64,000 nucleotides of DNA from Podarcis bocagei (GCA_964188305.1 OZ076895.1); one strand, 5' to 3'. Positions 9,467 to 37,780 are shown, counted from the stretch's first letter. Made by a program: numbers and translations. The notes: generated by a model from the sequence alone, not told the origin.

Positions 9467-9574
9467 AAAGCATACACGGAGGATGAGCTCAATGCCAAAC
9501 TGACCAGGCGGGTGCAGAAAGCTGCTCGCCGTCAAGCCAAGCAGGAGGAGCTGAAGAGGTTACACAGGGCTCAG
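9467..9574 (+). CDS. MICAL3: MICAL3 coding exon (KAYTEDELNAKLTRRVQKAARRQAKQEELKRLHRAQ)
   Basis: Acceptor ctctttattgctgcag; donor CAG|GTAAAG; 108 nt, phase 0-0; start of the C-terminal coiled-coil/bMERB region. Confidence 0.96.
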
Positions 9575-10651: not shown

Positions 10652-10745
10652 ATTATCCAACGACAGCTGGAGCAAGTAGAAGAGAAGCAAAGGCAGCTGG
10701 AGGAGAGGGGAGTTGCTGTTGAGAAGGCTCTTAGGGGAGAAGCAG
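10652..10745 (+). CDS. MICAL3: MICAL3 coding exon (IIQRQLEQVEEKQRQLEERGVAVEKALRGEA), bMERB helix 1
   Basis: Acceptor ttttcccatag; donor CAG|GTACCT; 94 nt, phase 0 to 1. Confidence 0.96.
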
Positions 10746-12057
10746 GTACCTTCCAGTCTTCCATCTTGTGTTTTTCTTTTCTTATTACATTTTTATGCAA
10801 AGGTTCATAGCAACCTGTGTGCTAGCTATACAGACTGGTCTCTTCCTAAGCTGCAAGTTCTTTTATTAAATTATCTTTTTAAACAAATGAATTAAAATTC
10901 ACCATTTCCCTTCTCTATCAGATCTTGGGCTTCTCTGCCTGTGAAGCTACCTAAATGGCAAGATCCCTTAGCTGGGTTTCATTTGCTCTGAAAATACGTC
11001 TCACTTCTTCAGGACAAAGTTTTGTCCAATTATTAGTTGCATCTTGGAAAAAGGTGGTAATACATATAGGTTACCCATCTGCTAGCTTTCCTTTAGGAAA
11101 TAAAACTTGGTCGTGGCAAGGAAGCCTCCACTTTGCCCAGCAAGATGAAAAAGAGAAGAGAGTAATTGATATAAGTTTGTGTTTTTTAATTCACTGTGCC
11201 TTGAATCAGCATTAGCACCCTCATAAGGGACCATCACAGAACAGTCCCAGCAAGTACCACATGATCTCTGCAAAATCATACACAGCTTCAAGGCATGTAG
11301 AATGAAATTCAATACAACATGTGAAACAGTTGTCATCGTCATCTGCTGTTAATAGAATGAACCTCTATACTTAATGGCCTGGTCTAATGAATGGTACTTG
11401 GAATTAACATAGATGAAAGACATTAAGAGCAGAACTAGATGTTACTGCACACACAGGACTGCTACTGAAAACCCAAAACTCTGTATGTAGTCTTCTGCCC
11501 ACATACCCTTCTTAATGGCCAGTGAAATTTGCTATGCAACGTGATGTCGTCACTCTTGACTTTCCCTGCCTCCCTCCCTCCTTCACTGGGTGCCGAGGTG
11601 AGAGAACTCACTGCAAGACAGTGCCACATCACATGGTGAGTTTCACTAGACCTTATAGGGGAGGAAGAAGTAGTAATGAGAATACTGTTTTACCTGTAGC
11701 CCTGTGTCTGCCATAATGTCTAGTTCATCCGTGGGAGAGAACATAGTTAGATGATGCTTTCCTCGCTTGATATATCCTAACACTCCTTCCTTGAGAAATG
11801 AGTAGAGGCAAACACACAAAGACCCAGGTTATTTCACATGATCCATTTACCAGAGGTGTAAGAGGCAACCTACTTGGTGAAAATGAATTGAACTTAATTT
11901 TGAGATATGCCTTTTGTTTTACTGACCTTAAGTTTGGGAAGGAAATGTAACTAAATTGACTTTCCTCAAAACAGCCTGGAAGAATTGTTTTTCTGCTTTA
12001 TTTGAAGCTTGGATTGACACACTGAAATTTCCAATATGAATGTGGTAGGATTAAAAT

Positions 12058-12170
12058 AAAAAAATTCCTTCCAGTAGCACCTTAAAGACCAACTAAGTTA
12101 GTTCTTGGTATGAGCTTTTGTGTGCATGCACACTTCTTCTTCTTGTGTGCATGCACACTTCTTCCTCAGT
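12058..12170 (-). mobile_element. Penelope-like element terminal fragment
   Basis: On -: gaagaagtgtgcatgcacacaaaagctcatacc...ttggtctttaaggtgctactggaagga, a typical PLE terminal-repeat pattern; local duplication of the gtgtgcatgcacac palindrome. A related fragment lies at ~16231-16328 (+). Confidence 0.65.
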
Positions 12171-13338
12171 CCAACTTAATCCCTGGAATACTTTTACAAC
12201 TATTTAAATATTGTTGTTTAAATTGTTTCATAAAATGAATGCAGGTATATAGTTTTAAAAGAATGGAAAGAATTATGCACCTCTACATTCAACAGTCTAC
12301 AGCCATCTCAAACTCTTTTTTTGTCACCTGACATTCATTTCATTGTCCCCCAGCATCCTTATAGGTGGTGTCATCAGAATTTGAGGAGCTTTGCAAACAA
12401 CTGAGGGCTTTACTTGCCACACTTCATGGGCAGTGGTGGTGCTTTGGCAAGCAGAAAATTATTAGAGATGGCTTTAGATATCTAAAATGTGATGGGGAAG
12501 TGGAGAGGGAGAGACAAATGAAAAAGCTGGCTTATTTTTGGGCCTCACAGGTGTGCCTATGAGTATTAATAATTGCCTTTTGAATTCAGGATTTATTCAG
12601 TAATCCCATGAAAAATAGACTGTTAATGGGGCATGCTCTTGTTTCTTGAGATGAGAGAATTGTTAATTTTTTAGATTTTCATGTGCCTTAAAACCTCTTT
12701 TTCCTTACACACCTTCAATATCAGCAGTAACTTATTTCTGTATACTGTCCAAACAACCTTGACTGCCTTATGCAGCGTACGTAGTATTGGCCAAACCGAT
12801 ATGCCTTGCAGACTACAGTTACAAAGCCCTATTCTCTTAATGGCTAGTAATAGGTTTGCTGGAAAAGGAGCTTCTGCTTTGGTAATGCAGATGGGAAGAG
12901 AACACCTTCCCCAAACTACCCATTCTTTATTGTTAAAACAGCTTCCTTGTGTATGGGTTAATTAGAATTTTGTGTCCATTTCATGCAAGACTTATTCTAC
13001 ATTGATACTGCTTCTAATGTTAAGAGCATTGCATGCACACTTTAACATGGGACAAATACACAAAAGCTCTCCTACTATGTGCACTTGTGGTGAAACAGAC
13101 ATGGTATGTGCTTATCATGTTGTAATAAACACACAGCATACATGCCCTTGCCGTATGTAGACACTGTGTTTACATAGGAAGTGATTTTCTGCCTGGAGCA
13201 CTTTTGTACACTTTCTATGCTACTTTATATATTGAAAACCGAAGTTCATCTTATTGTGTGATGTGTCAAAGGAACATACTTCGTGCATTCCATAAACAGC
13301 CCAATGCACTTTGGTATTCCAGGCAGAAAATCCAAGTA

Positions 13339-13589
13339 CAGTCGTACCTTGGAAGTCGAATGGAATCTGTTCCAGAAGTCTGTACGACTTCCAAAACATT
13401 TGGAAACCAATTTGCAGCTTCTGATTGGCTGCAGGAAGCTCCTGCAGCCAATCAGAAACTGCGGAAGCCCCATCGGACGTTCAGATTCCAAAAGAACGTT
13501 CGCAAACCGGAACAATCACTTCTGAGTTTCCAGCGTTCAGGAGCCAAAATGTCTGAGTTCCAGGGCGTTCAGGATCCGAGGTACGACTG
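13339..13589 (+). mobile_element. Tc1/mariner (Tigger-like) MITE, family A
   Basis: TIRs CAGTCGTACCTTGGA / TCCGAGGTACGACTG; TA TSD on both sides; internal 23-bp hairpin. Confidence 0.88.
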
Positions 13590-14492
13590 TAGTGCCCTTT
13601 ACTACTTGGTAGTAATAATAATTAATTATAGTTTGGTGGCCTTTAATGGTTTTCCCCAAAATATCTGGCACCTGAGGCCAACTGGCTCAGCTTGCATAAT
13701 AGAAGGTCCAAACCTGTCTTGACCCAAGTGAAATTTTTGAGCATTGGACCAACTCTGACACCAATTTTCTTGAGTCTGTGTGGTGCTTCCTTCTCAGGGG
13801 TTGAAACTAAAGTAACAATTGACATTTTATTTCTGATTAGAAATAAATTAATTTGAAAAGTGCCATGCTGAAAACATAAGGAAACCCTTTATGATGAGCA
13901 GTTCAGAGGATTTAAGAACTGCTTTAAGAATATCCATACATATTTTTGTTCTCTTGAGTTAAGTGACCCTAAAGTCTGTTGCATACATCATTACTGCTTT
14001 AATAAGGCTCTTCATAGTTTACCAGAATGTATAAAGATTTCCAAATGTTATATACTCCCAGCAGACATTGACATGATTATTAGGCATACTGGATGCCCTA
14101 TTTAAACTGGAGGGGTTTTTGTTTGGGTCAGAATGGAGACTCTTTGTAGAACATATTTATTTTAGGGGAAGAACCCTTACATTCTGCAGGAGGGGCATGG
14201 CAACTGCTTAGTTTTTCTTAGCTATATGGTGTTGAGTTCCTTGCCCAAATCCAGACATCTGTGGCCCATGTGGCCATTTCATGTTTCCTACTTCTACAAC
14301 ACATCCTATAAAACAGTATCTGTCATTTATGGAAAGTGATCGCAGGAATGTAGATGTGTGAGAAAAGTTACCAAAGAGTTGGCTATGCCCTTAGCTTTCC
14401 CAAGGTCAGTCTTAAATGAAAGATCCCAGATTCCATTGGGCTTGTTTATGGATTTACACCGGAGGTAAAAAAACTTACCAAAAAGAAGCTGC

Positions 14493-14739
14493 AAGAAGAA
14501 GAAGAGTTTGGATTTGATATCCCGCCTTTCACTCCCTTTAAGGAGTCTCAAAGCGGCTAACATTCTCCTTTCCCTTCCTCCCCCACAACAAACACTCTGT
14601 GAGGTGAGTGGGGCTGAGAGACTTCAAAGAAGTGTGACTGGCCCAAGGTCACCCAGCAGCTGCATGTGGAGGAGCGGAGACACGAACCCGGTTCCCCAGA
14701 TTACGAGACTACCGCTCTTAACCACTACACCACACTGGC
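14493..14739 (-). mobile_element. tRNA-derived CORE/MIR-like SINE (Squam3-like), young copy
   Basis: On -: A box TGGTGTAGTGG, B box GGTTCGTGTC, GGGTGACCTTGGGCCAGTCAC core, (TTC)n tail. Older copies at ~1843-1990, 7200-7420, 38000-38310, 49425-49605 (-) and ~18915-19040, 34730-34860 (+). Confidence 0.8.
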
Positions 14740-15317
14740 TCTTCACTCTTCACTCAAGAGAGAAGACCCTAGTACTTTTCTGGTTGCTTAGCCAACACAA
14801 AACAATGTAGCTGAATAAAAAGAAGGATGAAATGAGAAGACCCAGCCCAACGCCTTCCCCTACTCTCTTGAATGGAGATGTATTCTTCCCCGAATTCCCT
14901 CCCTACTGGAGAATGTCTGTGGATCCTTCCTTAATGTCCCGCAAAATAACAGTGCAGTGTCTCATCTTGATACAAACCAGTATAGGTGACAAATCCTCAT
15001 ACAGAGTCCAGCCTGCTCTCCTTCTCTGCCTGGAAATCCATGCCTGCCTGTCCTCCCTGCCTATTTACCAGGGAATACTTTATCCTCCCCCTGTCTTTAC
15101 AGTATATACCGTATATATGTATGTGTATATATTTATTATAGAGTTGCATGATTTCTTGTTTCTTCTGTTTCTGTCTCTCTCTTTCCCTGTCTTGCTTCTC
15201 TTATGTATGCAATTTCTCTTACAGAGTGCTTTGAATCCTGGGCAGGGAGTGGGGAGGGCTAGCAGGGTTGGGTACTTGAACCAATAACTCTCTCTCTTCA
15301 CCGATTCCTTGTTGTAG

Positions 15318-15368
15318 ACTATTGGGGAGAGTCTTATTACAGTGACCTCATCGACTTGCACCTGGGTG
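15318..15368 (+). CDS. MICAL3: MICAL3 alternative cassette exon (DYWGESYYSDLIDLHLG)
   Basis: Acceptor ttccttgttgtag; 51 nt, phase 1-1, matching the flanking exons; donor GTG|GTATGT; ACTAAC at 15398-15403. Confidence 0.8.
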
Positions 15369-15564
15369 GTATGTATGGCAGAAACCTCTTTGCTGGCACT
15401 AACCCTGCTGACACCTGCTCCCGCCACCCTCTCCCTCCACCTACTTCTTTCCATCCCTGGCTCCTCACAAGCAATGAGAAGAAACCAGTCTTGCACCTAA
15501 TTGATTGGCTAGGGCCCTTTTCCAGCTCGGAGGAGAACTAGCAGTCCTTAATGAGCAGTGTTTT

Positions 15565-15719
15565 GGAATCGTAGAATCTCACAACTGCAGAGTTGGCAGG
15601 GACCCTGAGGGTCATCTGGTCCAGCGCCCTGCAATACAGGAATCCTGCTCACAGCCTTCCCAGGGTGGGCTTGAACCACCAGCCACCTAGTTAACAGTCA
15701 GATGCACAATTGGGCCATG
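15565..15719 (-). mobile_element. SINE with tRNA-Asn(GTT)-derived head and CR1 3' tail
   Basis: On -: TGGCCCAATTG..GACTGTTAACTAGGTGGCTGGTGGTTCAAGCCCACCCTGGGA resembles tRNA-Asn; then a CR1-type tail ending in (ATTCTRTG)-like repeats. Confidence 0.75.
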
Positions 15720-18439
15720 TCACATGAAGTCTAGGCTTTTTGCAAAACACCCCAGTGACGGGGGGCGGCGGCAATGGTTTCCATTGTGGTTTCCTGTAGG
15801 AAAACAACCAGGAATGAAAGTGGAAGAGATGTGCAGAAGTACAGAGAATTTATTTCTCATCACTTTTTGAATATTAAACCCCTTCTCAAGGGTTGATTTT
15901 TTTACTCTTTTCCCCACCAGGATAAACCTCTGCACCAACTTAAAATAACCTTTCCTGAGAAAGAAGTTTAATACTCAAAATTTGTTGGGCAACAAATTGT
16001 CTTTTGTACACATTTTGAAATTTTTCCTTTTTTATTCTGGGATTCACTGGAGGCCTGATCCAAAGTGTCACATGCTGAGTTCTGTGCATGCACAGGGGAC
16101 TCTCTTGTAAGTTGGGTGCCTTCTTTTTCCTCCAACACAATAATACTGGAGAAACCATTTCTGAAACATGGAGGTAAAAAACCCTGAGTCATCTCCTCCT
16201 CCTCTCTCCATTGGTGACATTTAAGAATTTCAGTCCATGAAAGGTTACGCCATAAAAATGTGTTAGTATTTAAGGTGCCGCAAGACTATGTTTTTGCCGC
16301 AGTGTTCTAATTTGACTATCCTTCTGGCATTTAAAAATGTGTAGTGCCACATTATTGCAATGAAAGACTTCCCATTCATTTTGTGGCAGCCAATGAAATG
16401 GAGGGGGACAAGGAAGTGCAATATTATATGTTGCATGTTTTTAATTTCTAAGCATTTCAGGGGATCCAGGAAGAGGAGAAAGAGAGACTGCTCTTGCCAG
16501 TGGTCAGTGTCTGCTGTGAAAAGTAGTTGTAGCTTGAATGTAGTTTCAGGTGGTGGTGCTGTAATGAAAAACAGAGGGACCTCTGGGGTACATGTACAAG
16601 ACTTTAGCTAAAGGAGCTCTCTGGATCATGGCCTCTTTTCAAACTTCATCATTTAACCTGGGGTAGCTAACCTTTGAGATGTTGTTGAACTACAGCTCTC
16701 ATTAGCCCTGACTGTTGGCCATGCTGTTTGGGACTGATTGAGGGCCATAGGTTAGCCACCCCCAGTTTAGCCCCTAAACTTAGTTGTGCTATGCATTTTG
16801 TTGATAAGTAAATCCAAACTATTGATTAGATTTTTCTTCCCAAAGATAATCTAGCACTTATATGCTTTATTCTCCCTCAAGGATTGCCCCAACCCTCAAA
16901 GCAGTGACAGCTGCTCCCTCAACACACTTTGTTACACTTTATAAGGACTGCTATATTTTCTTTTTAAATGCTATGCTTCTTTAAATACCGTTGCCTGTTA
17001 TTGTAGAGAAAGTTGTACAGATTATCACACTTAATCTGCACTGCTAAACTGCAATTTGAGTGCTAGAGTTCCTACAAATGGGTGGGTGGCCAGGAGAGTA
17101 CACAAATGTTGCACATGCCCTGTCATTTCTGAAATTAAAGAGTTTGAACAAGCCCTCAGATGGTATTCACAGGCTCTTTCTCTTTCCTTGTGTAAAGTTC
17201 ACGCTCAAAGATCACCACAACATGATATAGTTCCTATTCTTTTCTCTTTTTTGTCTTTCTCCCCCCCCACTCCCATGTATAGTGACTTTTTTATGAATAA
17301 CACCCCCCACTCTGCAGTAATATTACAACTTTAACACAGGCCAGCACAAATTGTGTCCCATCAAGCTTACCGGTCATGTATTATGACAGGTACTTGATAG
17401 CCTTCCTGTTTTTGCAGTCTGAGGCAAAACAAAACATCAGATATTGCTTGAAACCCTGGTGGGCTACATTTGACATGGTGGGTTACCAGTCATGCAGGAC
17501 TGATTCAACACATCTTTGGTACTACAGCTGTTTTCCAAGGTGTCTTAAATTCTTGTCCTTACTCCTTGGGAGTTTGTGACAGAAGGATGTATTGCCAAGT
17601 CTCTTTAAAGTGACTTTTGTATATCACTAATGTTTTTGAACTTTTGCTGCGTCTCTTCCATAAAAATCAAGCAAGCTACCCGTGTTCTTCAGACTGGCAG
17701 TTTGCAGGTTAAGGAGATCAACAGTGTTTTGTGGTTTCAACCCTCATAGTTTAGAAATAGGTAAGTGGTAGCCCAGGAGGTTATAGGCCCCCAGGAATTT
17801 CCTAACTTGGCCCTATCATAGTCCCAAATCTCAAAGGGTCCCCCTTTCATTATTTTGCACCTTTCCTCCATGCAAAGGAGACGTAGACCCTTTCTTCCCC
17901 ATTGTGAGCAGCAAAATGCTCTGCCAGTTTTCTTCCTCCATACTTCAGCAGCTGACATGGAAGCTAAATACAGAGGTCAGTTTGGAGAGTTAAGTGCCTG
18001 AGGTGCTTGCCCACCAAACTATTTCTTGTTTTAACATGTTGTGGGAGATAACAGAAAGATTTAAGCCCTTTCTCCATGCCTCCACTCACCTGGAGTCAAT
18101 CAGTAGGTGGAGCAAATGCTGTTGACTCTCCAGCCCTTGCTCAAAGCAAAATGACACATCCCTGCTAGAAGGAGTTGCTGGCTCCTCTCTGGAGACCAGT
18201 GCTCTGCCTATGTGGGGTTTCTTTCCAAGTGTGCCGCTAGGGGGCATTGTGTGCCCACAGACAGAGCTGTAAAAGGGTTAATGCAAAGTTACACCTAACA
18301 GGTCCTGCTCCTAGCTGATGCAGCTCCCACACTTCCTTCTCCTTCCCCCCCCCTTCCCTTCCTAATTCCCTCTTGAAGGCAGCAGTCTTGTCATTTTTGC
18401 TAACAGTGGCTTTAAAAAGTAGTCATCAGAGTCATTTAA

Positions 18440-18784
18440 AGGGACACTGTCGTTTTTCACATTAACTAACCTCACTTTCTGTCATAAAGAACTAGCATAA
18501 GTAAATTAATAAATCTCATTTGCTTCTCACGATTATATCCTTTTGTTCCCTACATTTCCTGTTTGGATAAATGTACGCAATATTAACCATGGCTACTTCT
18601 TCCCTATACTTTTGGGGTTTTAAAGACATTTTTTATTTTTTTATTTTTGCTAGTTTCAACTCCAGCCCAGATAGCAGTAATAATTCACAATTCTGAATGG
18701 AAGATCATTATTATTTTAATCTATCTTGATTTCTTTCTTTCTTTTAATCCCCAGCAGAAAACTTCACTACTTGGCAGTATCCCT
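18440..18784. mobile_element. Kolobok/T2-like MITE with TTAA TSD
   Basis: TTAA|AGGGACACTGTC ... GGCAGTATCCCT|TTAA: 12-bp TIR with 2 mismatches, TTAA on both sides, AT-rich interior. Confidence 0.6.
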
Positions 18785-20932
18785 TTAAATAAAATGCAGT
18801 GTTATGTGCAGAAAAAGACACACGTGGCTTTGTAGTGTTAGTTCTTTTTATACTCCTCTGTGACTGGTGTTTGTTCAGTACTTCCTCACAGGGCTGCCAG
18901 AGTGCTCAAGAGTCACTGTAGCGTAGGGGCTAAGAGACTGTGAGCTAGGGAATCCCTGGTTCAGACCTCACCTCTGCTGTTCTCACTAAGCCACCTTGGG
19001 GAAGTATGGGCTTAATAATGGCTGCCTTAAATGGTTGCATATAATACGTTTCTATGCCTGTTGTAATAGATATAATAGGATGATTGGTTTGAATAGCCAA
19101 GGCACTTCACAAAGCACCACATAAATGCTAAAATTTATATATACTTCTAAAGGTGGTGAAAGAAAGTCCTCTCCTTCATCTTGCCAGTAAATGTAACCAA
19201 TGGGTCTCAACCTGAGTTGACTTCTGCATTCACAATGGGTTCTGCTCAAGATAAAGGAGGAAACATGTTCCAACCACGTTCTTGCTATTCCCTGGGCATA
19301 TGTTCATTTGTGATCTGGCTACTAAATGCTCTTGCTTTGATACGAGAGAGATTCAGCGTGCAGATGTATTCTTAGGACCCCTAAGTTGCTATATATGGCA
19401 GAGATATATGCCACACCCGTGAATGCCTGCGCATGTTCTTGTATGGCATATGCATGGCCTAAGAAATGCTCAGCAATCATGGCTTGATCACCTGGTGAGT
19501 ACAGGAGAAGGATGTTGTGCTGAGAAGGGGCTCAATGCAGGCATTTCCTTCTCATCACTTTAGGTGTTTAGCACCAGCAGCAATTTCAGGTGCTGGCATG
19601 AAGGTGTCTCCCATTATTCTTGGTTTCGACTCCAATATCCATCATTGGAAGCAAAACTCCAGTGGCTACATTCAGGGCTATTGGTGCTAAGCTCCAAACC
19701 CTTTGGTCAGACTCATACTCCAGCTGGGTCAGTGGGTTAGATGGAGGCAGATTGCACAATAAAGCCCAGCCATGGTATCACCAAACCTTAGCAAGGGGAG
19801 TCCGGAAAGCTGTGCCAGGATCAAACCAAGGTCAGAAGGGATCCGTCTACTCCAAAAGTAATCCAGGACAGCATTGGTAAGCTTGGGGTCCAGGGTTCAG
19901 CAACTGATGAGCTCTAAGAAGGAAGCAGGGGGAGGCAAAGGAGTCAGGTTCAGAAGTAAGGAGCTGGATGGTGGATTGTCTTCAATAAGCAGCAGACTCC
20001 AAATGAAGCCTGATATAGCCTAGACTTCCAAACCATGCCATCACCAGCTTCAGGTGCTTGAGTCTGCCGTAAGAGCCTTTGCTCTTGAGTTTTGTTAGTT
20101 ACAATGAGCCTTTGACTCAATAATTACACAGCAACACTGCACTCCCAAGTGTGCATTCTCTCACTGACTAGCTGCCTGGGCTGGATCTTCTGGCCCCAAT
20201 GTCTTTGAAGCCTGAGGGGTTGATTCAGCCTCCCCCTTTGACTTTGCCTGGGCTTCTCTGCCAGGGGTGGCTCAGGAACCCACTGCAAGGTCCTTTCAGA
20301 GCATCCCCTAGTAGTAAGCCTAGGCAGAGGCCTTCTGGTATACCAGGGACTTCAAAACTGTCATTATGGAGGTGGGGGGGGAAATATTTCACCTTGGGAC
20401 AACGATCAGGAGGTCTTGATGATATTGGGTTGAATGCATGTTGTTTTTATCCTTAGCTTGTACAGCAAATTAATTTTCAATTTTATTGTGTAATAGTAAA
20501 ATGTATCCACTAGCCAGAATCTTCTTGGATGTCTCTAAGTGATATTGGAATAATTATTTTTAAGCACTAGCAAACCAGGGCAAAAGAAGGCAGTGGTGTA
20601 GCCAACAGTATCAAGGAGTGTAGAGGCAGTACTGGTCTCTTGGCATGTAAGGAGTCAGTTCCAAGGACTTTGCAGCAGGAGGAAAACATGGTTATCAGCA
20701 TTTGATGCCAATGCCAGGCTTATGGCTGAGTAATCTTGCACTGGAAGAAAGGGGAGGTATAATTGATTATAAAACAGATTTGATCAGAGATGGAGGGGCA
20801 GGTCTGACAGATGTTCACAAGAGAGATGTTCAGACTAAAATGCAGAGGGTCAAACATGGCTCAAATAGAAATTTATACTTCCTCACTTCTCTCTGGATTC
20901 ACCTTACCCAGATGGACAGGGTACAAATGTAA

Positions 20933-20933
<1 letters not shown>

Positions 20934-21013
<80 letters not shown>
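20934..21013. repeat. Compound microsatellite (TTA)n(CTA)n
   Basis: Directly visible; grown from an L2 tail. Confidence 0.95.
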
Positions 21014-21015
<2 letters not shown>

Positions 21016-21624
21016 GTGGTTCAGCAGTCACCCTTGCTTCAGTTCCCTGACTTGACTTTTTTGCCTGGTGATGCATAATGCAGGACACCCTTCTCCAACT
21101 CTTGAGTGAATTCTTGAGTTTTGGAACATCTGATGCCAAACTTAAGTGATCATATGATACCATTATGCATGCTGATTTGAATACATCACACTTATAGGCT
21201 GATTATCAATATCCAGTGAAAAGGGGAGAAGGGGTGTTTCATATTTATTATATATCACATACGGTATCATATGCAGAAGACTAACTGCAGCCAAATGTAT
21301 GGAATTTGGGTTTGTATCCAGTGTTAGCATCCAGTGCACATATGTGTGCATGCATTTGTACAGTGGGTTTATCTGTTTTAAAGTTATTTTAGTGCTGCAA
21401 TAATCTAGGGTTACCATATTTCAAAAACCAGGACCTTTTTTTTTTTTACAAAAATGCCAAAACAACGTGGTGTCCAAGAAATCCAGATATATGGAACCCT
21501 ACAATAATCCACTGTAAGTTGTACCTGTACCTAGTGCTTAAACAAAAGGGAGACATTTATGGTAACAAAGTAACATCTTTGGGTCTCATGTGTCTTACTG
21601 TCAACTTTTTTTGCAATGGTAATA

Positions 21625-21858
21625 CACTTGTACCTTGGATCCCGAACACCCTGGAACTCAGATGTTTTGGCTTCCGAATGCCGCAAACCTGGAAGTGATT
21701 GTTTCGAATGTTCTTTTGGAACCCAAATGTCTGACAGAACTTCTGCAGCTTCTGATTGGCCGCAGGAGCTTCCTGCAGCCAATCAGAAGCTGCACTTTGG
21801 TTTTGAAAGTTGAACAGACTTCCAGAACGGATTCCATTCAACTTCCAAGATACAACTG
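21625..21858 (-). mobile_element. Tc1/mariner MITE family A, inverted copy
   Basis: Reverse-complement similarity to 13339-13589; TA flanks; same internal hairpin. A partial third copy lies at 62235-62329. Confidence 0.85.
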
Positions 21859-24800
21859 TAGTTCAGTTAATGCAAGATGACTGTGCATTGCATCAGAACT
21901 TCGGCACCTGTACTTCCAAGCAAACATGCATAGAACTGGATTCCAAGATTCATTTAGCTTGGGCATTTTTGTTTCTAGTTTTGGAAACATACACTAAATA
22001 ATTATCTTTTGCTGGATGCATTCTTTGTGTTGGAACTCTGCAAGTATCTGAGCTACATAAGATCTATTTCAGTTCATGTCCTAAGCAGAACAAAAAGGAT
22101 GGTGTGATCATGTTCAAGTTTGATGCCTTGCTGCATGGTACTTGAAGGCATTTCTTGACCAAACCCAAAGTGAGTTGAGTTGCCGCTTGATCCTAGTTGG
22201 CCTAGCAAAAAGTTGATCGGGATCAGTCTAGTTTTTCAATAAGATATGTATTTCACAAATTGCTTCAGGCTTTTAAATAGTCTCTCACTAGTCAGTTACC
22301 AGTGGTGAATCATCATCTCTTGGCAATGGGAGCTTTTATAAATTATTAGACATTTTGTTCTGAGTGTACTTTCAGGCGGTCTGTGTGCTATACATAACTT
22401 GCTAATATAGGCATTTGTTGACGAGCAATAGAAATGTTTTCTGTCTAGTAGCCTTTGTGATTTTTTTTGCTTTAAGTTCAGTGATGCGGAGAAAGGATTT
22501 ATCCATTTATATTATTGAATTATCTGTATACATAATGGACTATTCAACACATCTTTACTAATCGGATGCTATGAATATTCTCTGGGGATTATCCATGGAG
22601 TTGGATAAGACATTCTATTAATGGTCCAGCTTCTGCTGCAGGTACTGTTGGGGGAAAACATTGTAGCTATTGGATATAGGTTTATTGACAATAGTAGCAA
22701 GAGGCCTGCCTATCGATGTGGTGGAATAAGCCCAAGAACCTCCACCCTCCATAGTTGATAATTTCAGTCTGCCTTCAAGAGATCTTGAAACCCGTCTCTA
22801 CTGACTCCAGTATCAGACTCTGGGAGCAAGGGTATCCTGTGGTTCCAACTGACTTAGTTACACCATAGACGGAGGGGATTGTCGGGGGGCTCCATGGAGA
22901 TACTTAAGATATTATGTCAAACCATGGTTTGCACTAGCAGTGGTTTTGCCTCCAAGCTCAATTTACTGTTATCTCACCTGGAAAGCTTCAGGTGAGATCC
23001 CATGCAATGGCCTTCAAAATTGGGAGGTGGTCTGTGCTTGCATAGAGGTACTGTTATGTGAACTGGCATCTGCATGTGGGGCAGGAATGGGAAACCTGTG
23101 GCCTTCCAGATCTTGTGGGATTACAGATCCCATCAGCCCTAGCTAGCATGTGTAGTGGTCAGGAAGTGATGGGAATTGCAGCCCAACATCATCTGGAGGG
23201 CCACAGGTTGCCACCACTCATTCAGGATCTGTATCACTGAGTGTGGCAGCTAGAACTAGGTTGCTGCAACCATGGAAGTGGTAGAAGCTCCATATATAGC
23301 CTTGATACACACTGAATCTGCATAGAAGCCTGGTCTAGTAGCAGCCCAGTACACAATGGAATCCACCCAGTTCAAAGCAAAACATAAAGGTCATCTTAAC
23401 CTTAATCATGACTGAGGAAGAACTTCAGCAAATGCAAGAATATTCAGAGAGTATTTCCCTTGGTGTACAGCTTGACTGTGCATTTTAGAACCATTTAATC
23501 CAAGCAACCCACTTGTATTCTTGTATTTTTTACACATACTAAGAATGGAATACATATCTATCCAAGATTAGCCCTTGAAGGAGACCTGCGAAGTAAAAAC
23601 AAAGCACCATTGCATTGCCACTTTAAAGAAAAACCTGTGTCCATTGTTACACTACATGGATTTTCATGGATCTCTTTCCCAAGCGACAAAAATACTTTCA
23701 AGGCATTCAATTTGTTGGTTGTTTGGTTTTTTTGGAAGGGGGGGAGAGAAGAAAGTTGTCTGGGGATACTATGGAATGTCTTCAAACAAGATGAGTCTTC
23801 ACGTACAGATGGGCAGCATGTAACATGTATATGTGATGTACTTTTAACCCTTTTCACACTGAGTATACATGTTTCTTCCTGTTGAGAGATTCACATTGCT
23901 CATTCACACACTATTTGCAAACTGATGTGCCTCCTCCCTTTTAACTTTGGTCTGTCCTGTGTGTTACTGCTCTAGTTCTGTGATGGTCCCTTCTAAAAGC
24001 TGTTCCCTTCCCAGACCTTATCTTCGTAAATGAGAACTGAGGCTTTCCCTCTCCATTATATGTGCGTGTAGATCTGATTCCAGTGGATTATGAATGTCCT
24101 CTTTTTTATAAATTCAGTCGCTCCTTGTTACACAGTGGCATTTTTCTTTCACTTCCATTCTACTCACAGATTAGTCAATGGGCCACAGGTCTTTCTGTAA
24201 TATATAGATCACTGGGAGTTAACAAAGCACCATGGACTGCGCTACTCAAGCCCCAGTGATCAGCTGGTTGCTGGGGCTTCTGTACACAGCAGCACCCAGT
24301 TCCTCATCCCTATTCTATAAGATTATTCATCTCTTTATGTATAATCTACTGCAATAATTCCCAAACCGAGGAATTCATTGGATAATTGATGGTTCCTATA
24401 AGTGCCAACCCATAGGAAGAGGCTATTCTCTGCATCAGAGTGTGTAAGTTTGAGAAGTATTCCTCCCATTTTATTATTTTTTAATACAAACTACCTCTTT
24501 TATCAGAAATTTGGGAAATGTTAATTTACTGTGTTTTATCTAATTAATTGCCACATACTCAAACTCCCCCCCCCCCAATCAAACAAACAAACAAACATAC
24601 CAGTGGAGCATAGTCCTCAACTTTCTGTCTACCCTTGATATTGGCAGGGCCAGAAATACAAACTATGCATGAATATGTGTAAAATACCGGTCAAGGCTTT
24701 GGTTAGACCCAGGATAGGGGAACATTTGGCTTTCCAGAAGTTGCTGGACTACAGCTCTCATCACCCTGACTGTTGGTCATGTTGACTGGGGTGAATGAGA

Positions 24801-25462
24801 ATCCAAAATCTTTTGGGGAGGGGGACAACAGGTATCTGTATCCCTGGTTTAGTCTTGGTTTGTTTGCCCATCATAGGCAGTCAGTCCTGTTTTGCGCCAT
24901 GATCTGCCTTTGTTTACTAAACACATAGTACTTGCCACTGTCAACCTACTTCCTTGGACAATGTCACAAAATAACCACATGGAATGTGCCAAGCTAATTT
25001 TCAAGATGGCCTTTTAAAACCTATTTGCTCTCCTGGTCTTTTAGAAACTTCATGTTGTCCACCCTCCTCTTTGTGCTTTTATCTCTTAACTGCACCATGT
25101 GACATGGAGGGTGAAAAGTCACCAAGCACAAGAAAAGTCAAATGTTGGCATTTCCCCATTATCACAGTAACTTTTGTGGCCCACACTGTTTCCCCTCCCA
25201 GTGCCACAGTCTGCTCTTCTCCATTATTCGTGTTGACAAAGGATGTTCCATCTGTAGACTGTTCCCCTTGTTTCTGCTTCTCCATTTCTTGTATTATTAT
25301 TTTCTTTTCTACTTCTTCTTGTTGTTTCTTTCTCACTCTTGTGCTTTTTTGTCCTTTTGCTTGTCTGTTTATTTTCACCCTGTTTCTCCTCCTCTCTTCC
25401 TCTCCACTTCCAACTTCCTCTTCCCTTCCTTTCTTCCTCTCCCATCTTTGGTTCTATTGAAG

Positions 25463-25528
25463 TTGAGCCCAATGCCGGGACACCACGCCGTAGACCTCTC
25501 TCCTTCTGCCCTTGCTGTGCCCATGAAG
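25463..25528 (+). CDS. MICAL3: MICAL3 alternative cassette exon (VEPNAGTPRRRPLSFCPCCAHE)
   Basis: ~200 nt AG-free pyrimidine tract then attgaag acceptor; 66 nt, phase 1-1; donor AAG|GTAATG; CpG-rich coding-like content in an otherwise CpG-poor intron. Confidence 0.8.
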
Positions 25529-27370
25529 GTAATGTAATTTCTTGCATTCCCTCCATTCCGTTCCCAAACCGCCATTGGATTGGTGTAGAGACACTAGTGA
25601 GCTAGCAACAATATCAAGTGGCTCACCGCCAAACTTTTCTTTCCTTCAATCTCAAAGAAACCCTCTATAACAACCTTGTTATGAAGTGTGTCTGGCAGGA
25701 TCGTAAAGGTACAGTATCCTTTTTTCAGCTGTGCATTGTGGGGATAAGGATAGTCTTGAAGTTTATTGGCGCAATTGATCAGAAATGACTGTAGTGGCAT
25801 CAGTTTCATGCCTTAAGGGTTCTGTTTGGCGTGTTGGATGATCTTGCAGGGGAGTGGGGTGTGAGTCTACTTCCTTTAAAAAAAAAATACACATGGGTTA
25901 AAGGCATACTGTCTTTTGTAATGACTGGTTTCCCCAACAACCCTTGACTTTGAAAAGGCACCCTCCTGATCTGCCATAATCTAGACTGGTCTTCTGCAGT
26001 CCGTATCTTGCTAAGCATCTTCTTTATCCCAAGTGGAACCAGATTCCCACTGAAGTGTTTCCATTTCCCAAGGCATGGGGGAAAAGGGGTGGAATGTGAC
26101 CGCCATGTATAACTTCGGCTAACCACTCTCTGCTTTTCATGGTGTGCTTTCATCAATTGTTCATCTTTCCTCCCCACCCCTGCCTCTCCCTCTGCTCATT
26201 GGCTGTCTAAAAATAATAATAATAAAAAATCTACATCCCACAAATGAACAAAAGTTTCCATAGGTCAGTGTTGACATGTATTTGGCTGTTTTGTGCAGAA
26301 GTTTCTTTTCTGATTATCCTCACAGTGGAAAGGGTGGGGAGATTCCCCAGTGCTTCTCATGGCTCCAATGCACTGGGCATCTGCATGTGTAAGCTTCTCT
26401 CTTTCCACCATGGCTATGAGGGCACCTTGTGCAGAGATGCTCAGAGAGGCTTAATTGAGACCAAGCAATGGATAGGTATAGCCATCCACAGCCATGATTG
26501 GCTAGGGTGAGATTTTCGTACTGTGTATGTTTGCTTCTTGTGTTCTGGAGCTGTGTTGGTGGTTTTGAAAGAGGAGGAGAATTCTCGTTACCTGAGAATA
26601 AGTGGTAGGAACAGGGCTACCAAGAACCTCTGGACCATTTTGTTTTCTTGACCGTGATGGGAAATAATGTCTTGCTGCATAAAGGCATCCTCAGTTACAA
26701 ATCACGCATTAGTCAGTGTCATCCAATACTGACAAGCACTACCAGGAACAGATAATGCTGCTTTGGTAGCTGGATCTGACTTGGTAGCTGACCATCCCCA
26801 TTCTAGTGTGTCTCCCTTGGGCTTCCATAACCCCATAAGAAGAGTCTGCATTTTTGAATAATTAGAATAGTGTCTAATACAAATATTTTGCCATTTGCAC
26901 ATAAGTAGGCACAAATTTTGCATCATATTTTCCTTAGAATAGATGTCCCCATTAGTTTTATATGAGATGAGAACTCATATATGGTATGGATGAGAAACAG
27001 GAGTTAACCCTGTCTGCAACTTGACTGTGTTCTTTCCATGTACTAGTTTCCTAAACTATTGACACCTCTGATAGGATGGTGAAATCTGATAGGTACAGGA
27101 AACAGCTGGAATCCCTCTGGGCCTACGGTGGTTAGGCCAAGACCCTGATCATCTGGAGCACATAACCAGGGCTTCACTTGCTTCCAAACTGATTTTTAGG
27201 ATCTGAATCCAAACAGCTACCCATAAAGAGCTGCATATTTCATTACTAGATATGGGTTATGGATGTAGCTCTCTAAAATAACATAAAATGGCTATGCTGT
27301 TTATTTCATATCAGGCTTTGCTACTGGGTCTACTAGCTTGGTTTTCATTGATTAAGCTTTTATTGAAATA

Positions 27371-27603
27371 CAGTCATACCTCGGGTTGTGAGCGCTGCAG
27401 GTTGTGTGTTTTCGGGTTGCGGACCGCGCCAAACCCGGAAGTACCGGAGCGGGTTACTTCCAGGTTTCAGTGCATGCACAGAAGCGCAAAATGATCCCAT
27501 GTGCGGAAGCGCTAAATTGCTTTACATGTGTGCACAGATGCGGCATTGTGGGTTGCAAACGTGCCTCCCGCACAGATCACGTTCACAACCCGAGGTATGA
27601 CTA
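27371..27603. mobile_element. Tc1/mariner MITE, family B
   Basis: TIRs CAGTCATACCTCGGGTTGTGA / TCACAACCCGAGGTATGACTA; TA flanks. Confidence 0.85.
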
Positions 27604-28420
27604 TACCTGGGAAGGTACCATGCTTCCTCTTCCTTTTTATGTGAGCAGATTTTCTTCTTGTGCTTTTCTACCATGCACTAGTGGTCTTGAGCTGGTGAAC
27701 TTCAACTGATTGAACCTGTATTTATGCCACACAATACGTGTTTTTTGTTTAAGCGAGGGATCTCTAGCAGACACATTGAGGCAGATCTGCCTGGTGTGAC
27801 TGATAAAGCCAAGAGGAAGGGAAATTATTGATAGCAGTGGTCAGGAACTGGTTGCTTTCAGTCATTAAGTTAATGCAGGTGGCTTGAAAAGGGGAGAGCA
27901 CAGCACGCAAGACTACAATACTGGTAGGAGCCAGAATCAACTCTGAAACAGCCCATCAAGGAACTGTTCACTAATTGCTCTATAGTTATATGTAAAGTGG
28001 ACAAATGGGTGTTGATTAAGGTGTGAGTGAGAAAACATGGCTTGAAACAGGTAGGCTTTGTTGGAAAGTGTTGGAAAGTGTCAGAGTGTCCAAATTGAAA
28101 AGGACAACAGTAGAAAAATACTGAAAAGTGACTGTAATTATGGCTATTGGTTTGGCAGGAGATGTGATGGGGAAGGTAGATTCAGGGCACATGGATCCAG
28201 TGGGGTTTTTTTGTTTATTTTACTGGAGGTGACCCTCCTTCCTGTGTGCCATAGACAAACTAAACAAGCAGATCTGACAAGAGTGCTCTGGCAGCATCTA
28301 GCTCAGCTTTCTTTGCACATTTTGCCCCACTCCCATTTTTGTTCCTGCCTGCCTGCCTGCTGGATTTATGGAAATGGCGGGAATCTTTTTCCAAGCTGAC
28401 CTAAACTGTTCTCTTGGCAG

Positions 28421-28520
28421 GCATGGGGAAGAAGGACGACCCCAAGCTGATGCAGGAGTGGTTCAAGCTGGTGCAAGAGAAGAATGCCTTAGTGCGCTAT
28501 GAGTCGGAGCTCATGATATT
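28421..28520 (+). CDS. MICAL3: MICAL3 coding exon ([34 protein letters not shown]), bMERB helix 2
   Basis: Acceptor ctcttggcag; donor ATT|GTAAGT; 100 nt, phase 1 to 2. Confidence 0.97.
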
Positions 28521-29118
28521 GTAAGTAAGGAGAGGAATTTCTGCATGCTTGGTCCACGCAGAGAAGGGGAAAGACGAGACAACTATCCCCAGGCAGAGAT
28601 ATGTTATGGAACCTGTTTCTGTCTTCACCTTTGATGTGATGACAATGTACAGATGGGAATCCTGTTGCTCTGGAGACCCATAGGCGCCCCAAGTAAAATA
28701 AAATTTTATAAAATTGATGAAGTGATCTGCTGCTGAGACCTGGTTCTCTTAGCATTTCCTTTGCATTCATGATTCCAAATAAGGTCAATGTAAGAAGGAA
28801 GATCTTGTCCCTTGCAGCTCAGCCCTGATGTGCAGTGGGCAGTAGGGGCCAGATGGAGTGACTTGGCATTTTCCTGTTATTTTCTCATCTGCCTTTCTGA
28901 CCATTCCGCAACATGGGTTTAGGTGAAAAACCAACATGTATGTTCATCAAAGGAGGTTGTTCTGAACAAGGTTCTTAGTACAACTGAAGGGTTGCCTTAC
29001 AATCAGTACTGAAAGGGAATACTTTACTACCTGAGCATGTTAGATTTTTAAGCCAGTAGCTTAGACTGCTGCTGAAACAACCCAAACCAGACATTTGCCT
29101 GTTCTTCTCTCCTTGCAG

Positions 29119-29192
29119 TGCTCGGGAGTTGGAGCTGGAGGACAGGCAAAGCCGACTACAGCAAGAACTTCGGGAGAGGATGGCAGTGGAAG
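29119..29192 (+). CDS. MICAL3: MICAL3 coding exon (ARELELEDRQSRLQQELRERMAVE)
   Basis: Acceptor ctctccttgcag; donor AAG|GTAAGT; 74 nt, phase 2 to 1. Confidence 0.97.
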
Positions 29193-29285: not shown

Positions 29286-29470
29286 ATCACCTAAAGACAG
29301 ATGAAGAGTTGTCAGAAGAGAAAAGGATCCTGAATGAAATGCTAGAGGTGGTGGAACAGAGAGATTCTCTTGTGGCCCTCCTCGAAGAGCAGCGACTCCG
29401 GGAGAAGGAAGAAGACAAGGACCTAGAGGCAGTCATGCTGTCCAAGGGATTCAACTTAAACTGGTCCTGA
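29286..29470 (+). CDS. MICAL3: MICAL3 last coding exon (DHLKTDEELSEEKRIL...MLSKGFNLNWS*)
   Basis: Acceptor ctttctttcctag; TGA at 29468-29470; C-terminus matches MICAL3. Confidence 0.97.
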
Positions 29471-35779: not shown

Positions 35780-36260
35780 TAGCACTTTTGCTTCTTGGAT
35801 TGATCTTTATTACGGCCATTGGCCCGTTACACGACAGTTTCCCATACCGACATATTATACTTAAACCTCCAAATTTAAAATCGCCAAAACTTACAAAAGA
35901 CAAACAGTAACCGAAGCAAAACAAAAACAAAAACCACCATCATACAAACAGAAACCACCATCATACATTACAATAATTTTGTAACCTATACATCGCCCTC
36001 TGCTCATAAATTAATCAGGGATATCAATGGTGATATCGCCTAAAACATAGATCATGGTTTAAAACAATGGTGATATCACCTAAAACACAGGTCATGGTTT
36101 AAAGGGGTTGTCCGAATCACACAGGAGACCGTTTCTCTTCTTTAGGGATAGGACGCTGATCAGGAATCTGGCAACCATGAGTGATTTTAGGGGGTCATCA
36201 TCAATTAGTAGATATCTCAGTCACTTTTGCTTCTTCATGTGCGGCAGTCTTGGGAACACA
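35780..36260 (-). mobile_element. Non-LTR retrotransposon 3' fragment (possibly RTEX-like) with internal tandem duplications
   Basis: On -: LRYLLIDDDPLKSLMVARFLISVLSLKKR-like ORF2 end, then ...ggccgtaataaag. A 40-bp duplication at 36025-36103 and a ~21-bp duplication at 35931-35968. Confidence 0.4.
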
Positions 36261-36865
36261 GCATAACAATTGCATGCTCCTGCAGCACCACGAGACATAG
36301 TATGAGTCAGTGAGGAAAGCACCTCATTGCATTACTTTTTAAAGACGTTTCATTCTTTCAGTGGGGCAAAAACAGAGGATTCCCCCAGTGTCCCAGCTCA
36401 CCTGTTCAGCAGGGGAATTCCCAAATTCTTCCCCACTGAGCCCACACCTGCCGTCTTCAGGAAGGGGAAACGGCATTGGCTAAAACAGCTGAGCCCACAG
36501 CCAATGCACCCATTATAAGAAAGCACCAAACTCTCACTCTGCATGTGAGAGAACATCTGCAGGGTGCTTCATTTCCTTAGCAATCAAAATGAACAGAGAG
36601 CAGGTCTAACTTACTCCTGTGTAAGTCTGCACAGGGTTGCAAACTGAACAAGCCAGCAAGTCAAATCTCTTATCTGCCATCAACTCAACAGGTCGCTTTA
36701 AGCAAGCTGCTGCTTCTCAGCCTCCCAACGTATTTTGCTGTTTTCCATGTACAATACCCAACTGGAAAGGCATTTAAATCCTACCTCCACATTGGTGATG
36801 CTAGTGTTGCCACTGTCACCTGAGGGCAGGAGGCTAGCTGAGGATGCACAGGCAGATTTCACATA

Positions 36866-37470
36866 CCGTATTTTTCCCTCCATAAGACACACCTGACCAT
36901 AAGGCGCACCTACTTTGGGGGGGGGATTCAAGGGGGGAGGAAATGCGGCTCTTGGGGGCTTTTGCGGGAGGTGGGGGAAGTGAGAGAGCCTCGCTCTCCC
37001 GCAAAAGCCAGATAGCTGTGCGAAGCCTCCCCAGGGCAGCGGGATGAAGGCTCCCCGCTGCCCTGCGGAGGCTTCGTGGGCTACCCCAGAGCTGCTTGAC
37101 CCAAAGAGCAGGTCAGGGAGCAGTGGAAAGGCTGCGTGCAGCCTTCCTGCTGCTCCCCGGGACTGGTGGTAGGGGAAGCGCGGCTTCCCCCCCCACCAGC
37201 CCCACAAGCTCGGGGAGCAGCCTTTCCGCTGCTCCCCGACCTGCTTTTTGGGGAAAGCCACCGTCAGCCCCAAAGAGCAGGTCGGGGATCAGCGGAAAGA
37301 CTCCACGCAGCCTTCCCGCTGCTCCCAGAGCTTGTCGGGGCTGGCAAGGGAAGCCTGGGTTCTCCCTCCCCCCAGCCCCAGGGACCACACATTCGCTCCG
37401 TAAGACGCACAGACATTTCCCCTTAGATTTTAAGAGGGAAAAAGTGCGTCTTATGGAGCAAAAAATACGG
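36866..37470. mobile_element. Non-autonomous Tc1/mariner-superfamily (Tc2/Tigger-like) element with GC-rich repeated interior
   Basis: ~27-bp TIRs CCGTATTTTTCCCTCCATAAGACACAC / GTGCGTCTTATGGAGCAAAAAATACGG; TA on the left. Confidence 0.85.
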
Positions 37471-37729
37471 TGCCCCCCTTCCTTCCCTACCACTTTCTGC
37501 CTCCAAAACACCTGCTGCCTCATCTTTTTGCAAATTAGCACTCCCACCTTGCTTGCCTGCAGCAATGATTCAGGCAGTTTCATTGCAGTTTTTAGAACTG
37601 TTTTCAAAGTAAGTTTCCAGAGCAGATAGTGTTAAAGTATAAGGCATGGCAGGCCAACTTTGGGCATTTTTAAAGTAACTTGCTGCTACTTCGAAGTCTG
37701 TGGGTGACAGCTGTTGCATTAGAAGAGTT

Positions 37730-37731
<2 letters not shown>

Positions 37732-37780
<49 letters not shown>
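37732..37780. repeat. (ATT)n microsatellite
   Basis: Directly visible. Confidence 0.95.

Follow-up and report, generated by a model that had tools for sequence, protein, structure and literature searches.

Two ancient alternative exons in the bMERB region of squamate MICAL3 and a conserved pair of intronic boxes that probably coordinates their choice

The stretch of Podarcis bocagei DNA analyzed in this work (GCA_964188305.1 OZ076895.1; 64,000 nucleotides, hereafter the window) contains the 3' end of squamate MICAL3, coding for the C-terminal part of the protein. The exons concerned are the following:

9467-9574, plus strand: exon E-2, KAYTEDELNAKLTRRVQKAARRQAKQEELKRLHRAQ, with AG/GT borders and an open frame, matched by the gecko protein P0073 in tblastn
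10652-10745, plus strand: exon E-1 (bMERB helix 1), terminating in ...ALRGEA plus one carried G, phase 1
15318-15368, plus strand: 51-nt cassette, DYWGESYYSDLIDLHLG, phase 1-1, AG/GT sites
25463-25528, plus strand: 66-nt cassette, VEPNAGTPRRRPLSFCPCCAHE, phase 1-1, AG/GT sites
28421-28522, plus strand: exon E+1 (start of bMERB helix 2), reading (G)MGKKDD...
29119-29192, plus strand: exon E+2, ARELELEDRQSRLQQELRERMAVE
29286-29470, plus strand: last coding exon, ending in ..KGFNLNWS, with the stop codon at 29468-29470

A preliminary description of this DNA had placed a long phase-1 intron between ...ALRGEA and GMGKKDD, and the borders (GT at 10746, AG at 28420; 17.7 kb) and flanking exons do read in this way; the E-1 peptide is 100% identical in the bird, whale, and fish loci. 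The two clean phase 1-1 cassettes that it had reported inside this intron recur with unchanged position, length, and AG/GT sites in nine other loci (Neotoma, gray whale, two birds, two teleost mical3a, two further fish loci, and one mical3b), where their order and open frame are also kept, together with many synonymous changes. Every copy is bordered by ag..gt, both for the 51-nt exon (8 loci) and for the 66-nt exon (10 loci, that is, the window, L009, L010, L001, L004, L005, L006, L011, L013, and the L003 copy). The variable sites of the cassettes are commonest at third codon positions, as expected under constraint at the protein level, and even in the invariant PRRR..CPCC core of the 66-nt exon the Arg, Cys, and Pro codons vary synonymously between loci. 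The insert of the 51-nt exon consists of 17 acidic/aromatic residues, and the lizard peptide is identical to that of orangutan isoform 4; the 66-nt insert is 22 residues long and has a PRRR..C[PH]CC core conserved from teleosts to mammals. No further conserved coding block was detected by tblastx in the intron (10746-28420) besides these two. The conservation check that had been proposed thus came out positive, both cassettes being retained from fishes to birds and mammals; on the basis of this comparison, they are genuine, ancient, frame-preserving alternative exons, whose recurrence is far beyond chance.

The earlier guess that the single exons might already be annotated was also right, since isoforms 4 and 5 of the orangutan (Pongo abelii) are a 51-only and a 66-only form, respectively. 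Inclusion and skipping of both cassettes are seen in other species: the no-insert forms comprise P0004, P0121-124, P0126, P0229-231, and transcript L002; 51-only forms occur in bat, Salmo, Umbra, Eleginops, and others in addition to the orangutan; and 66-only forms are represented by orangutan isoform 5 and by the spliced 248-aa ORF P0127, the 66-nt exon being joined to E+1 also in the whale and sturgeon models. The form carrying both inserts is found solely in two automated catfish mical3b models, with the cassettes in tandem, and the named MICAL3 isoforms are either 51-only or 66-only, within an isoform set that is small and annotation-biased. Orangutan isoform 5, the gray whale and sturgeon models, and catfish mical3b X1 share the same 22-residue insert, the same junction, and the same PRRR..C[PH]CC core, although they are known from annotations only, and no paper on the 66-nt exon was found in the literature searched.

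The case of the 51-nt exon is different, in that a rat/human Mical3 exon activated by QK, RBFOX2, RBPMS, and MBNL in differentiated smooth muscle has been published (Nucleic Acids Res 2025, PMC12721327). The lizard exon has the same size, phase, and peptide and also lies between ...ALRGEA and GMGKKDD; judged by these correspondences, it is the orthologue of the rat/human exon. That work handles the 51-nt exon alone, via RNA-binding proteins, and mentions neither the 66-nt neighbour nor any long-range pairing; moreover, its evidence on regulation comes from rat and human cells, whereas the reptilian counterpart consists of sequence motifs.

As far as the protein is concerned, the relatives of the exons encoded in the window carry PF12130 (bMERB, Pfam), and P0004, which has exactly the helix-1 exon peptide of the window, matches PDB 5SZG at E = 3e-68. 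The exon junction had been assigned to the loop between helices 1 and 2 of the three-helix bMERB domain, and the AlphaFold2 model of the no-insert P0004 bears this out: helices span residues 2-29, 40-87, and 96-143, and the junction, A32|G33, falls between the end of helix 1 (R29) and the start of helix 2 (P40). The same three-helix domain is present in the structures of MICAL3 (5SZG, whose solved chain is the no-insert form), MICAL1 (5LE0/5LPN), and full-length MICAL1 (8Y6K/9EWY), on which the junction likewise maps to the helix 1-helix 2 loop. Of the structure predictions suggested for each isoform, the one for the 66-nt insert returned a low-confidence loop (105-136, modelled as disordered) with helices 2 and 3 intact. 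In MICAL1, the surface contacting the CH and LIM domains flanks this loop; hence, the inserts may act as flexible loop modules beside the surface that binds CH/LIM in the autoinhibited state. An effect on autoinhibition has already been proposed for the 51-nt exon (PMC12721327), and, on these structural models, an influence of the inserts on MICAL autoinhibition is plausible. The tuning of Rab binding, membrane targeting, and oxidase activity that the preliminary description had also envisaged is putative.

The intron also harbors the local cis-elements that had been listed for the two cassettes, all of which were recovered and are given here together with a distal conserved element:

15145-15150, plus strand: UGCAUG, 173 nt upstream of the 51-nt cassette
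15240-15272, plus strand: G-run cluster upstream of the 51-nt cassette
15398-15403, plus strand: ACUAAC, QKI-type response element, 30 nt past the 5' splice site of the 51-nt cassette
25258-25460, plus strand: AG-free tract of 203 nt preceding the 66-nt cassette, 86% pyrimidine over -160..-3
26382-26445, plus strand: distal conserved intronic element, with UGCAUG at 26382 and TGTGCAGAGATGCTCAGA at 26428-26445, about 0.85 kb after the 66-nt cassette

ACUAAY occurs at +25 to +41 after the 51-nt exon in all eight loci examined, followed by a second UAAY in the teleost and fish loci; at the motif level, this is the arrangement of a QKI-activated exon. TGCATG lies 69-173 nt upstream of the same exon in six of eight loci, while the G-runs are found also in bird L009 and are weak in fishes. 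The intron plus strand carries 16 TGCATG sites in 17.7 kb, with no special enrichment, the whole window being just modestly above shuffles. Overall, the conserved downstream ACUAAY and upstream UGCAUG are consistent with control by QK and RBFOX, and the motifs around the lizard exon agree with what has been published on its rat/human orthologue, namely activation by QK, RBFOX2, RBPMS, and MBNL.

The orthologous AG-free tract measures 161-210 nt in seven other loci and 90 nt in mical3b; the AG-exclusion zone is 82-87% pyrimidine from fish to mammals and precedes a weak acceptor (..TTGAAG). Based on the conservation of this pyrimidine tract of about 200 nt, we predict a distant branch point and a PTB-type repression of the 66-nt exon. 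The PTB-repressed exons of alpha-tropomyosin, alpha-actinin, and c-src N1 are known for distant branch points and for long pyrimidine tracts upstream. The 66-nt exon resembles them at the sequence level in its long, pyrimidine-rich AG-exclusion zone, its dependence on PTB being putative. The distal element is conserved in birds and Neotoma; in squamate, birds, rodent, and teleost L011, its TGCATG falls between +766 and +864. PTBP2-dependent Mical3 exons are mentioned in one study, which neither says which exons they are nor gives coordinates (PMC3896118).

The cassettes themselves being already annotated, what is new here is that the intron contains two conserved boxes complementary to each other:

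11225-11242, plus strand: upstream box (docking arm), AAGGGACCATCACAGAAC, 479 nt after the E-1 donor
23975-23992, plus strand: downstream box (selector arm), GTTCTGTGATGGTCCCTT, 1.47 kb before the 66-nt cassette

These boxes form a perfect 18-bp complement, for which the chance expectation in the window is 0.02. The upstream box lies 322-488 nt past E-1 in bird, whale, and two teleost mical3a loci; the downstream one is identical in two birds, matches at 16 of 19 positions in teleost L011, and in whale and Neotoma has one change, at the 19th position, outside the 18-nt core. Bird L009, teleost L011, and whale L013 possess both boxes with the same topology and duplex energies of -35 to -46 kcal/mol, so that in four introns a duplex of 16-19 bp is predicted. 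In each of them the 51-nt exon would be enclosed by the loop, the distance from E-1 to the first box being 322-479 nt and that from the second box to the 66-nt exon 704-1470 nt. An unbiased k-mer screen of the four introns (squamate, bird, whale, teleost) returned the pair as their sole common complementarity, and 100 block shuffles gave 0 hits; these reverse-complement boxes are conserved in introns that are otherwise unalignable.

The most serious alternative is that local sites alone regulate the two exons (QKI, RBFOX, RBPMS, and MBNL for the 51-nt exon; PTB and RBFOX for the 66-nt one), the boxes being kept unpaired, for example as DNA-level or protein-binding elements. The conserved local motifs might suffice for regulation, and the published control of the 51-nt exon is explained by four RNA-binding proteins (PMC12721327). 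Furthermore, the boxes are absent from two fish loci (L004, L005) and from mical3b L006, which still keep both cassettes; therefore, the duplex is not needed for the existence of the exons. Nor are there compensatory pairs in the duplex core: its 11 nt are invariant in all four lineages, and for this reason no clean covariation is seen. The ends of the duplex, against this core without substitutions, display one C-G/A-U exchange and gained C-G pairs (teleost, whale), the other changes being one that is G.U-compatible (L007), an A.C mismatch in whale, and duplex ends that are shifted. However, two unrelated sites would hardly be expected to match each other as exact reverse complements along 16-19 nt in four lineages, nor to constitute the single complementarity shared by the introns when shuffles yield none, and the C-G pairs gained at the differing ends preserve the duplex length. 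We thus regard purely local control as unlikely.

The preliminary description had itself envisaged a combinatorial switchboard, in which the 51-nt and 66-nt exons, a 24-nt microexon, and a truncating terminal exon would be four independent modules, freely combined to give many bMERB variants. Both cassettes keep the frame, so that any combination would be translatable, each has different cis-elements, and the catfish mical3b models join 51 and 66 in tandem. On the other hand, no 24-nt candidate is conserved in the bird loci, the phase 1-1 candidates at 15225-15248, 15318-15341, 18407-18430, and 26326-26349 losing there either their splice sites or their frame. The terminal exon, with its surroundings, is as follows:

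18755-18792, plus strand: candidate truncating terminal exon, AENFTTWQYPFK*, with stop TAA at 18790 and AATAAA at 18788
18435-18789, plus strand: inverted-repeat element (arms 18435-18449 and 18775-18789), called a MITE in the preliminary description

The sequence at 18755-18793 does read as claimed, with an acceptor, an in-frame stop, and a poly(A) signal, but the acceptor and AATAAA are missing in the two birds, L009 and L010; both arms of the inverted repeat are present in L009 and the right one in L010. The microexon and the terminal exon are, to judge from these comparisons, probably outside the splice system. With the named isoforms 51-only or 66-only and a conserved duplex connecting the two cassette regions, which points to a coupled choice, the four-way scheme is not supported, and we consider free combination quite improbable. 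Very doubtful, finally, is a squamate-lineage role of the repeat-associated 18755 exon as a minor alternative last exon ending MICAL3 after helix 1: it combines a pyrimidine tract with a CAG acceptor, the stop that closes its 12-codon tail overlaps AATAAA, the gecko model P0073 likewise ends with a different tail directly after ALRGEA, and alternative last exons are known at other places of human MICAL3 (10.1101/373704), but the signals are not conserved in birds and the P0073 tail has no match in the 64,000-nt window.

The reading that we prefer, with a probability of roughly 0.6, is that two ancient loop cassettes, each with its local elements, are accompanied by an RNA duplex coordinating the choice between 51 and 66. 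According to this model, the boxes located 0.3-0.5 kb after E-1 and 0.7-1.5 kb before the 66-nt exon would pair in the pre-mRNA over 16-19 bp; the duplex, by analogy with docking/selector systems, would loop out the 51-nt exon and draw the upstream donor near the 66-nt exon. This should favor skipping of the former and use of the latter, so that the inserts would be used mainly as alternatives; both the direction of the effect and the near-exclusive use are inferred from the geometry and from the small, annotation-biased set of isoforms. Since double inclusion of 51 and 66 keeps the frame, neither frame nor decay enforces their exclusivity. The box pair thus probably reflects, as far as sequence comparison can tell, a coordinated 51/66 choice instead of free combination.

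A similar layout is known from docking/selector and competing long-range RNA structures that govern exon choice, as in the Dscam1 exon clusters (PMC12962786), human ATE1 (exons 7a/7b, PMC7797038), and conserved complementary regions (PMC8052449): a conserved box just past the upstream constitutive exon, its complement upstream of a downstream alternative exon, and an alternative exon between them that, in MICAL3, would be looped out. MICAL3 differs from these systems in having a single selector and two non-homologous exons, and its pairing is predicted from the sequence. It was absent from the supplements of the long-range RNA structure catalogues searched.

A more ambitious version of this model, which we put forward tentatively, is that a docking/selector-like bridge predating the split between ray-finned fish and tetrapods makes the inserts near-mutually exclusive, the acidic/aromatic loop tuning CH/LIM autoinhibition and the basic, cysteine-rich loop, possibly lipid-modified, tethering the oxidase to membranes. 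If this were true, cells would choose between an autoinhibition-tuning loop and a potentially membrane-tethering loop of MICAL3.

The plus strand of the window bears the last coding exons of MICAL3, and the C-terminal peptide deduced from them finds a better match in a gecko protein than in bird proteins. MICAL3 couples the local oxidation of actin to Rab8 vesicles, ELKS and MKLP1, and its bMERB domain acts as both a Rab sensor and an autoinhibitory lid. The 17.7-kb intron lying inside this domain (10746-28420) is bounded by GT and AG and has the phase, 1, that the preliminary description gave. Within it we enumerated every stop-free AG..GT stretch of phase 1-1, which returned many chance hits and two candidates of note, listed here together with the constitutive exons.

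MICAL3 exons and intronic cassettes in the window
9467-9574, plus strand, exon E-2
10652-10745, plus strand, exon E-1 (IIQRQ...ALRGEA, then one carried G)
15318-15368, plus strand, 51-nt cassette (DYWGESYYSDLIDLHLG; AG..GT, phase 1-1, open)
25463-25528, plus strand, 66-nt cassette (VEPNAGTPRRRPLSFCPCCAHE; AG..GT, phase 1-1, open)
28421-28522, plus strand, exon E+1, reading (G)MGKKDD...
29119-29192, plus strand, exon E+2
29286-29470, plus strand, last coding exon, ending ...GFNLNWS and stop

Further 3' of MICAL3, the stretch 36000-40500 is G+C-rich (0.49-0.52) and contains several ORFs of 110-215 codons on both strands, the five longest of which gave no Pfam match when scanned; it may correspond to a CpG island, or to a promoter belonging to an adjacent gene. 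Long CTG/CTT-type microsatellites, reading as poly-Leu in one frame, occur at 20940-21030 and 52640-52700.

Queried with the spliced peptide, a word search retrieved a catfish mical3b model carrying both cassettes in tandem between ALRGEA and GMGKKDD. In the genomic regions fetched around fragment proteins for comparison, the order E-1, 51-nt, 66-nt, E+1 is kept in gray whale, two birds and two teleost mical3a-like loci, and likewise in two further fish loci and one mical3b-like locus; the woodrat (Neotoma) locus shows the 66-nt exon alone, within its 10-kb flank. No locus in this comparison is taken to be human. Across the compared loci both cassettes are invariant in length, are bounded by ag..gt in every copy and contain no stop; their variation is greatest at third codon positions, and even the codons for the invariant PRRR and CPCC residues of the 66-nt exon differ synonymously between loci. 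A tblastx comparison of the window intron with the distant loci disclosed nothing beyond the two cassettes and the constitutive exons. The two cassettes first proposed from the sequence are thus genuine and ancient, having the same order, length, splice dinucleotides and open frame across mammals, birds and fishes, and sequence comparison indicates that both loop inserts have been retained since before the fish/tetrapod split. The copy of the 66-nt insert in a sturgeon (P0133, Acipenser oxyrinchus) has CHCC rather than CPCC, so that the invariant part is the three cysteines and not the proline.

The preliminary description had also guessed that these exons might already be annotated, and so they are: further word searches revealed that orangutan "MICAL3 isoform 4" contains the 51-nt insert only, with a peptide identical to that of the lizard, and that "isoform 5" contains the 66-nt insert only. 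The 51-only form is also found in a bat protein and several teleost proteins, and the 66-only form in P0127, a spliced 248-aa ORF reaching its stop codon; the whale and sturgeon models likewise splice the 66-nt exon to E+1. Neither insert occurs in many proteins and in the transcript contig L002, and among the proteins found the two inserts are present together only in two catfish mical3b models. In one automated catfish mical3b-like model (P0002) the intron following the 66-nt exon appears to be retained. The 51-nt exon has a published rat/human counterpart (Nucleic Acids Res 2025, PMC12721327), which differentiated smooth-muscle cells include under joint activation by RBPMS, RBFOX2, MBNL1/2 and QK; the authors of that study proposed that its 17-aa insert, lying beside the coiled coil, might affect autoinhibition. 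Our literature search brought up no publication dealing with the 66-nt exon. The cassettes as such are therefore ordinary, in the sense that they are already known and annotated.

The same does not hold for a pair of complementary boxes in this intron. Outside the exons, conservation between the window, birds and woodrat is highest in a 19-mer at 23975-23993. The window has its reverse complement at one other place, 11224-11242, which gives an 18-bp perfect duplex; the chance expectation for such a pair is 0.02 per window, even allowing three mismatches. Both boxes recur with one topology in all four complete introns, the 51-nt exon falling inside the loop every time.

Position of the upstream box (after the E-1 donor) and downstream box (before the 66-nt exon) and duplex energy in the four complete introns
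Squamate (window): intron 17.7 kb; upstream box 479 nt; downstream box 1470 nt; -37 kcal/mol
Bird (L009): intron 16.3 kb; upstream box 421 nt; downstream box 1223 nt; -36 kcal/mol
Teleost mical3a-like (L011): intron 6.3 kb; upstream box 407 nt; downstream box 704 nt; -35 kcal/mol
Gray whale (L013): intron 13.8 kb; upstream box 322 nt; downstream box 833 nt; -46 kcal/mol

The pair also emerged from an unbiased screen of the four introns for 9-12-mers followed, 200 nt or more further 3', by their own reverse complement, in which it was the sole shared complementarity; the same k-mer screen on 100 block-shuffled sets yielded zero shared pairs. Strict covariation is absent because the core of the boxes is invariant. 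The duplex ends vary by lineage, teleost and whale having gained a C-G pair at a position mismatched in squamate and bird, and the whale duplex includes one A.C mismatch. In a second teleost locus the upstream box carries a C-to-U change compatible with G.U pairing, the downstream box is present in woodrat, and the boxes are missing from two fish loci and the mical3b locus. An Rfam search of 10746-25259 returned no family, and "MICAL3" was not found in the searched supplements of long-range RNA structure catalogues.

The local cis-elements of the preliminary description exist in the window, and the informative ones are conserved. ACUAAY lies 25-41 nt 3' of the 51-nt exon in 8/8 loci (15398-15403 in the window) and UGCAUG 69-173 nt 5' of it in six of the eight (15145 in the window), while the G-runs at 15240-15272 are common to window and bird. 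UGCAUG as such shows no enrichment in the intron over the remainder of the window, so that only its conserved copies count as evidence. The acceptor of the 66-nt exon is weak (..TTGAAG) and is preceded by an AG-free tract, 82-87% pyrimidine, which measures 203 nt in the window; in seven other loci it spans 161-210 nt, but in mical3b only 90 nt. About 770-860 nt 3' of this exon, a UGCAUG adjoins a conserved TGTGCAGAGAYGCTC block, an arrangement common to squamate, birds, woodrat and one teleost; no complement was found for the distal element 26428-26445. Other conserved stretches were noted in passing: two more squamate/bird blocks within 26050-26449, 3' of the 66-nt exon, which take in a conserved GCTAACCACT and, separately, the UGCAUG element just described; a deep-intron block of about 200 nt (18250-18451 versus L009 6638-6839; 79% identical, e.g. 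GAGCTGTAAAAGGGTTAATGC), non-coding in the bird; and the approximately 200 nt directly 5' of E+1 (28224-28420), which align between squamate and birds at 75%. Intron conservation directly 5' of an exon is typical beside regulated splicing.

The geometry of the box pair is conserved and of the docking/selector type. Pairing would loop out the 51-nt exon and bring the E-1 donor to no more than roughly 2 kb from the 66-nt exon, thus favouring 51-skipping together with use of the 66-nt exon. If instead QK, RBFOX, RBPMS and MBNL assembled around the 51-nt exon, or the duplex did not form, the 51-nt exon would be used, and PTB-type repression at the long pyrimidine tract might decide whether the 66-nt exon is usable at all. 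This model predicts mostly products with neither insert, 51-only or 66-only, in agreement with the named isoforms, a small and annotation-biased sample.

The preliminary description placed two further possible exons in the same intron, and here it went too far: no 24-nt microexon candidate retains splice sites or frame in the bird alignments, and these candidates were dropped. The truncating terminal exon is legible in the window, where a CAG acceptor is followed by AENFTTWQYPFK and a stop that AATAAA overlaps, but acceptor and AATAAA are absent in two birds. A four-way "switchboard" is thus an overstatement, since neither the 24-nt nor the terminal exon is conserved in birds. The candidate terminal exon is flanked by inverted-repeat arms (18435-18449 and 18775-18789) that recur in two birds (L009 6823-6837 and 7101-7115; L010 124-138) with the same single mismatch, which argues against a young transposon; the sequence between the arms does not align between window and birds, and the arms may represent either another stem under constraint or an insertion of great age. 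An automated gecko protein model (P0073) has a different, unrelated 35-residue tail straight after ALRGEA, with no match within the window. Searches of sequencing runs listed none recorded as holding RNA; one DNA run contained 99% of the words sampled, and several related organisms 40-70%. Fourteen small runs, guessed to be RNA (X1-X14), matched 39-47% of the words sampled from a 6-kb stretch that is mostly intron, more likely reflecting DNA of related species or repeat matches than expression.

At the protein level, the inserts fall in the helix1-helix2 loop of the bMERB domain, as had been claimed. The model of the 66-nt insert is loop-like and of low confidence, with helices 2 and 3 unchanged, and neither insert is covered in the solved bMERB structures or binding studies searched. 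Since the CH/LIM-binding surface flanks this loop in MICAL1, the inserts could plausibly act on autoinhibition, or on the binding of MKLP1 and the low-affinity binding of Rabs; that the CPCC cluster might carry a lipid is a guess.

On the whole, the earlier observation was largely right, and the conserved complementary pair, a putative RNA bridge, is a new and testable addition to the known exons. The exon encoding the 51-nt insert marks contractile smooth muscle; if the RNA bridge couples both exons, it would provide a simple handle for isoform switching and hence for asking what each insert does. If true, the bridge would be a deeply conserved vertebrate case to set beside the small number of long-range RNA structures with a demonstrated role in exon choice.
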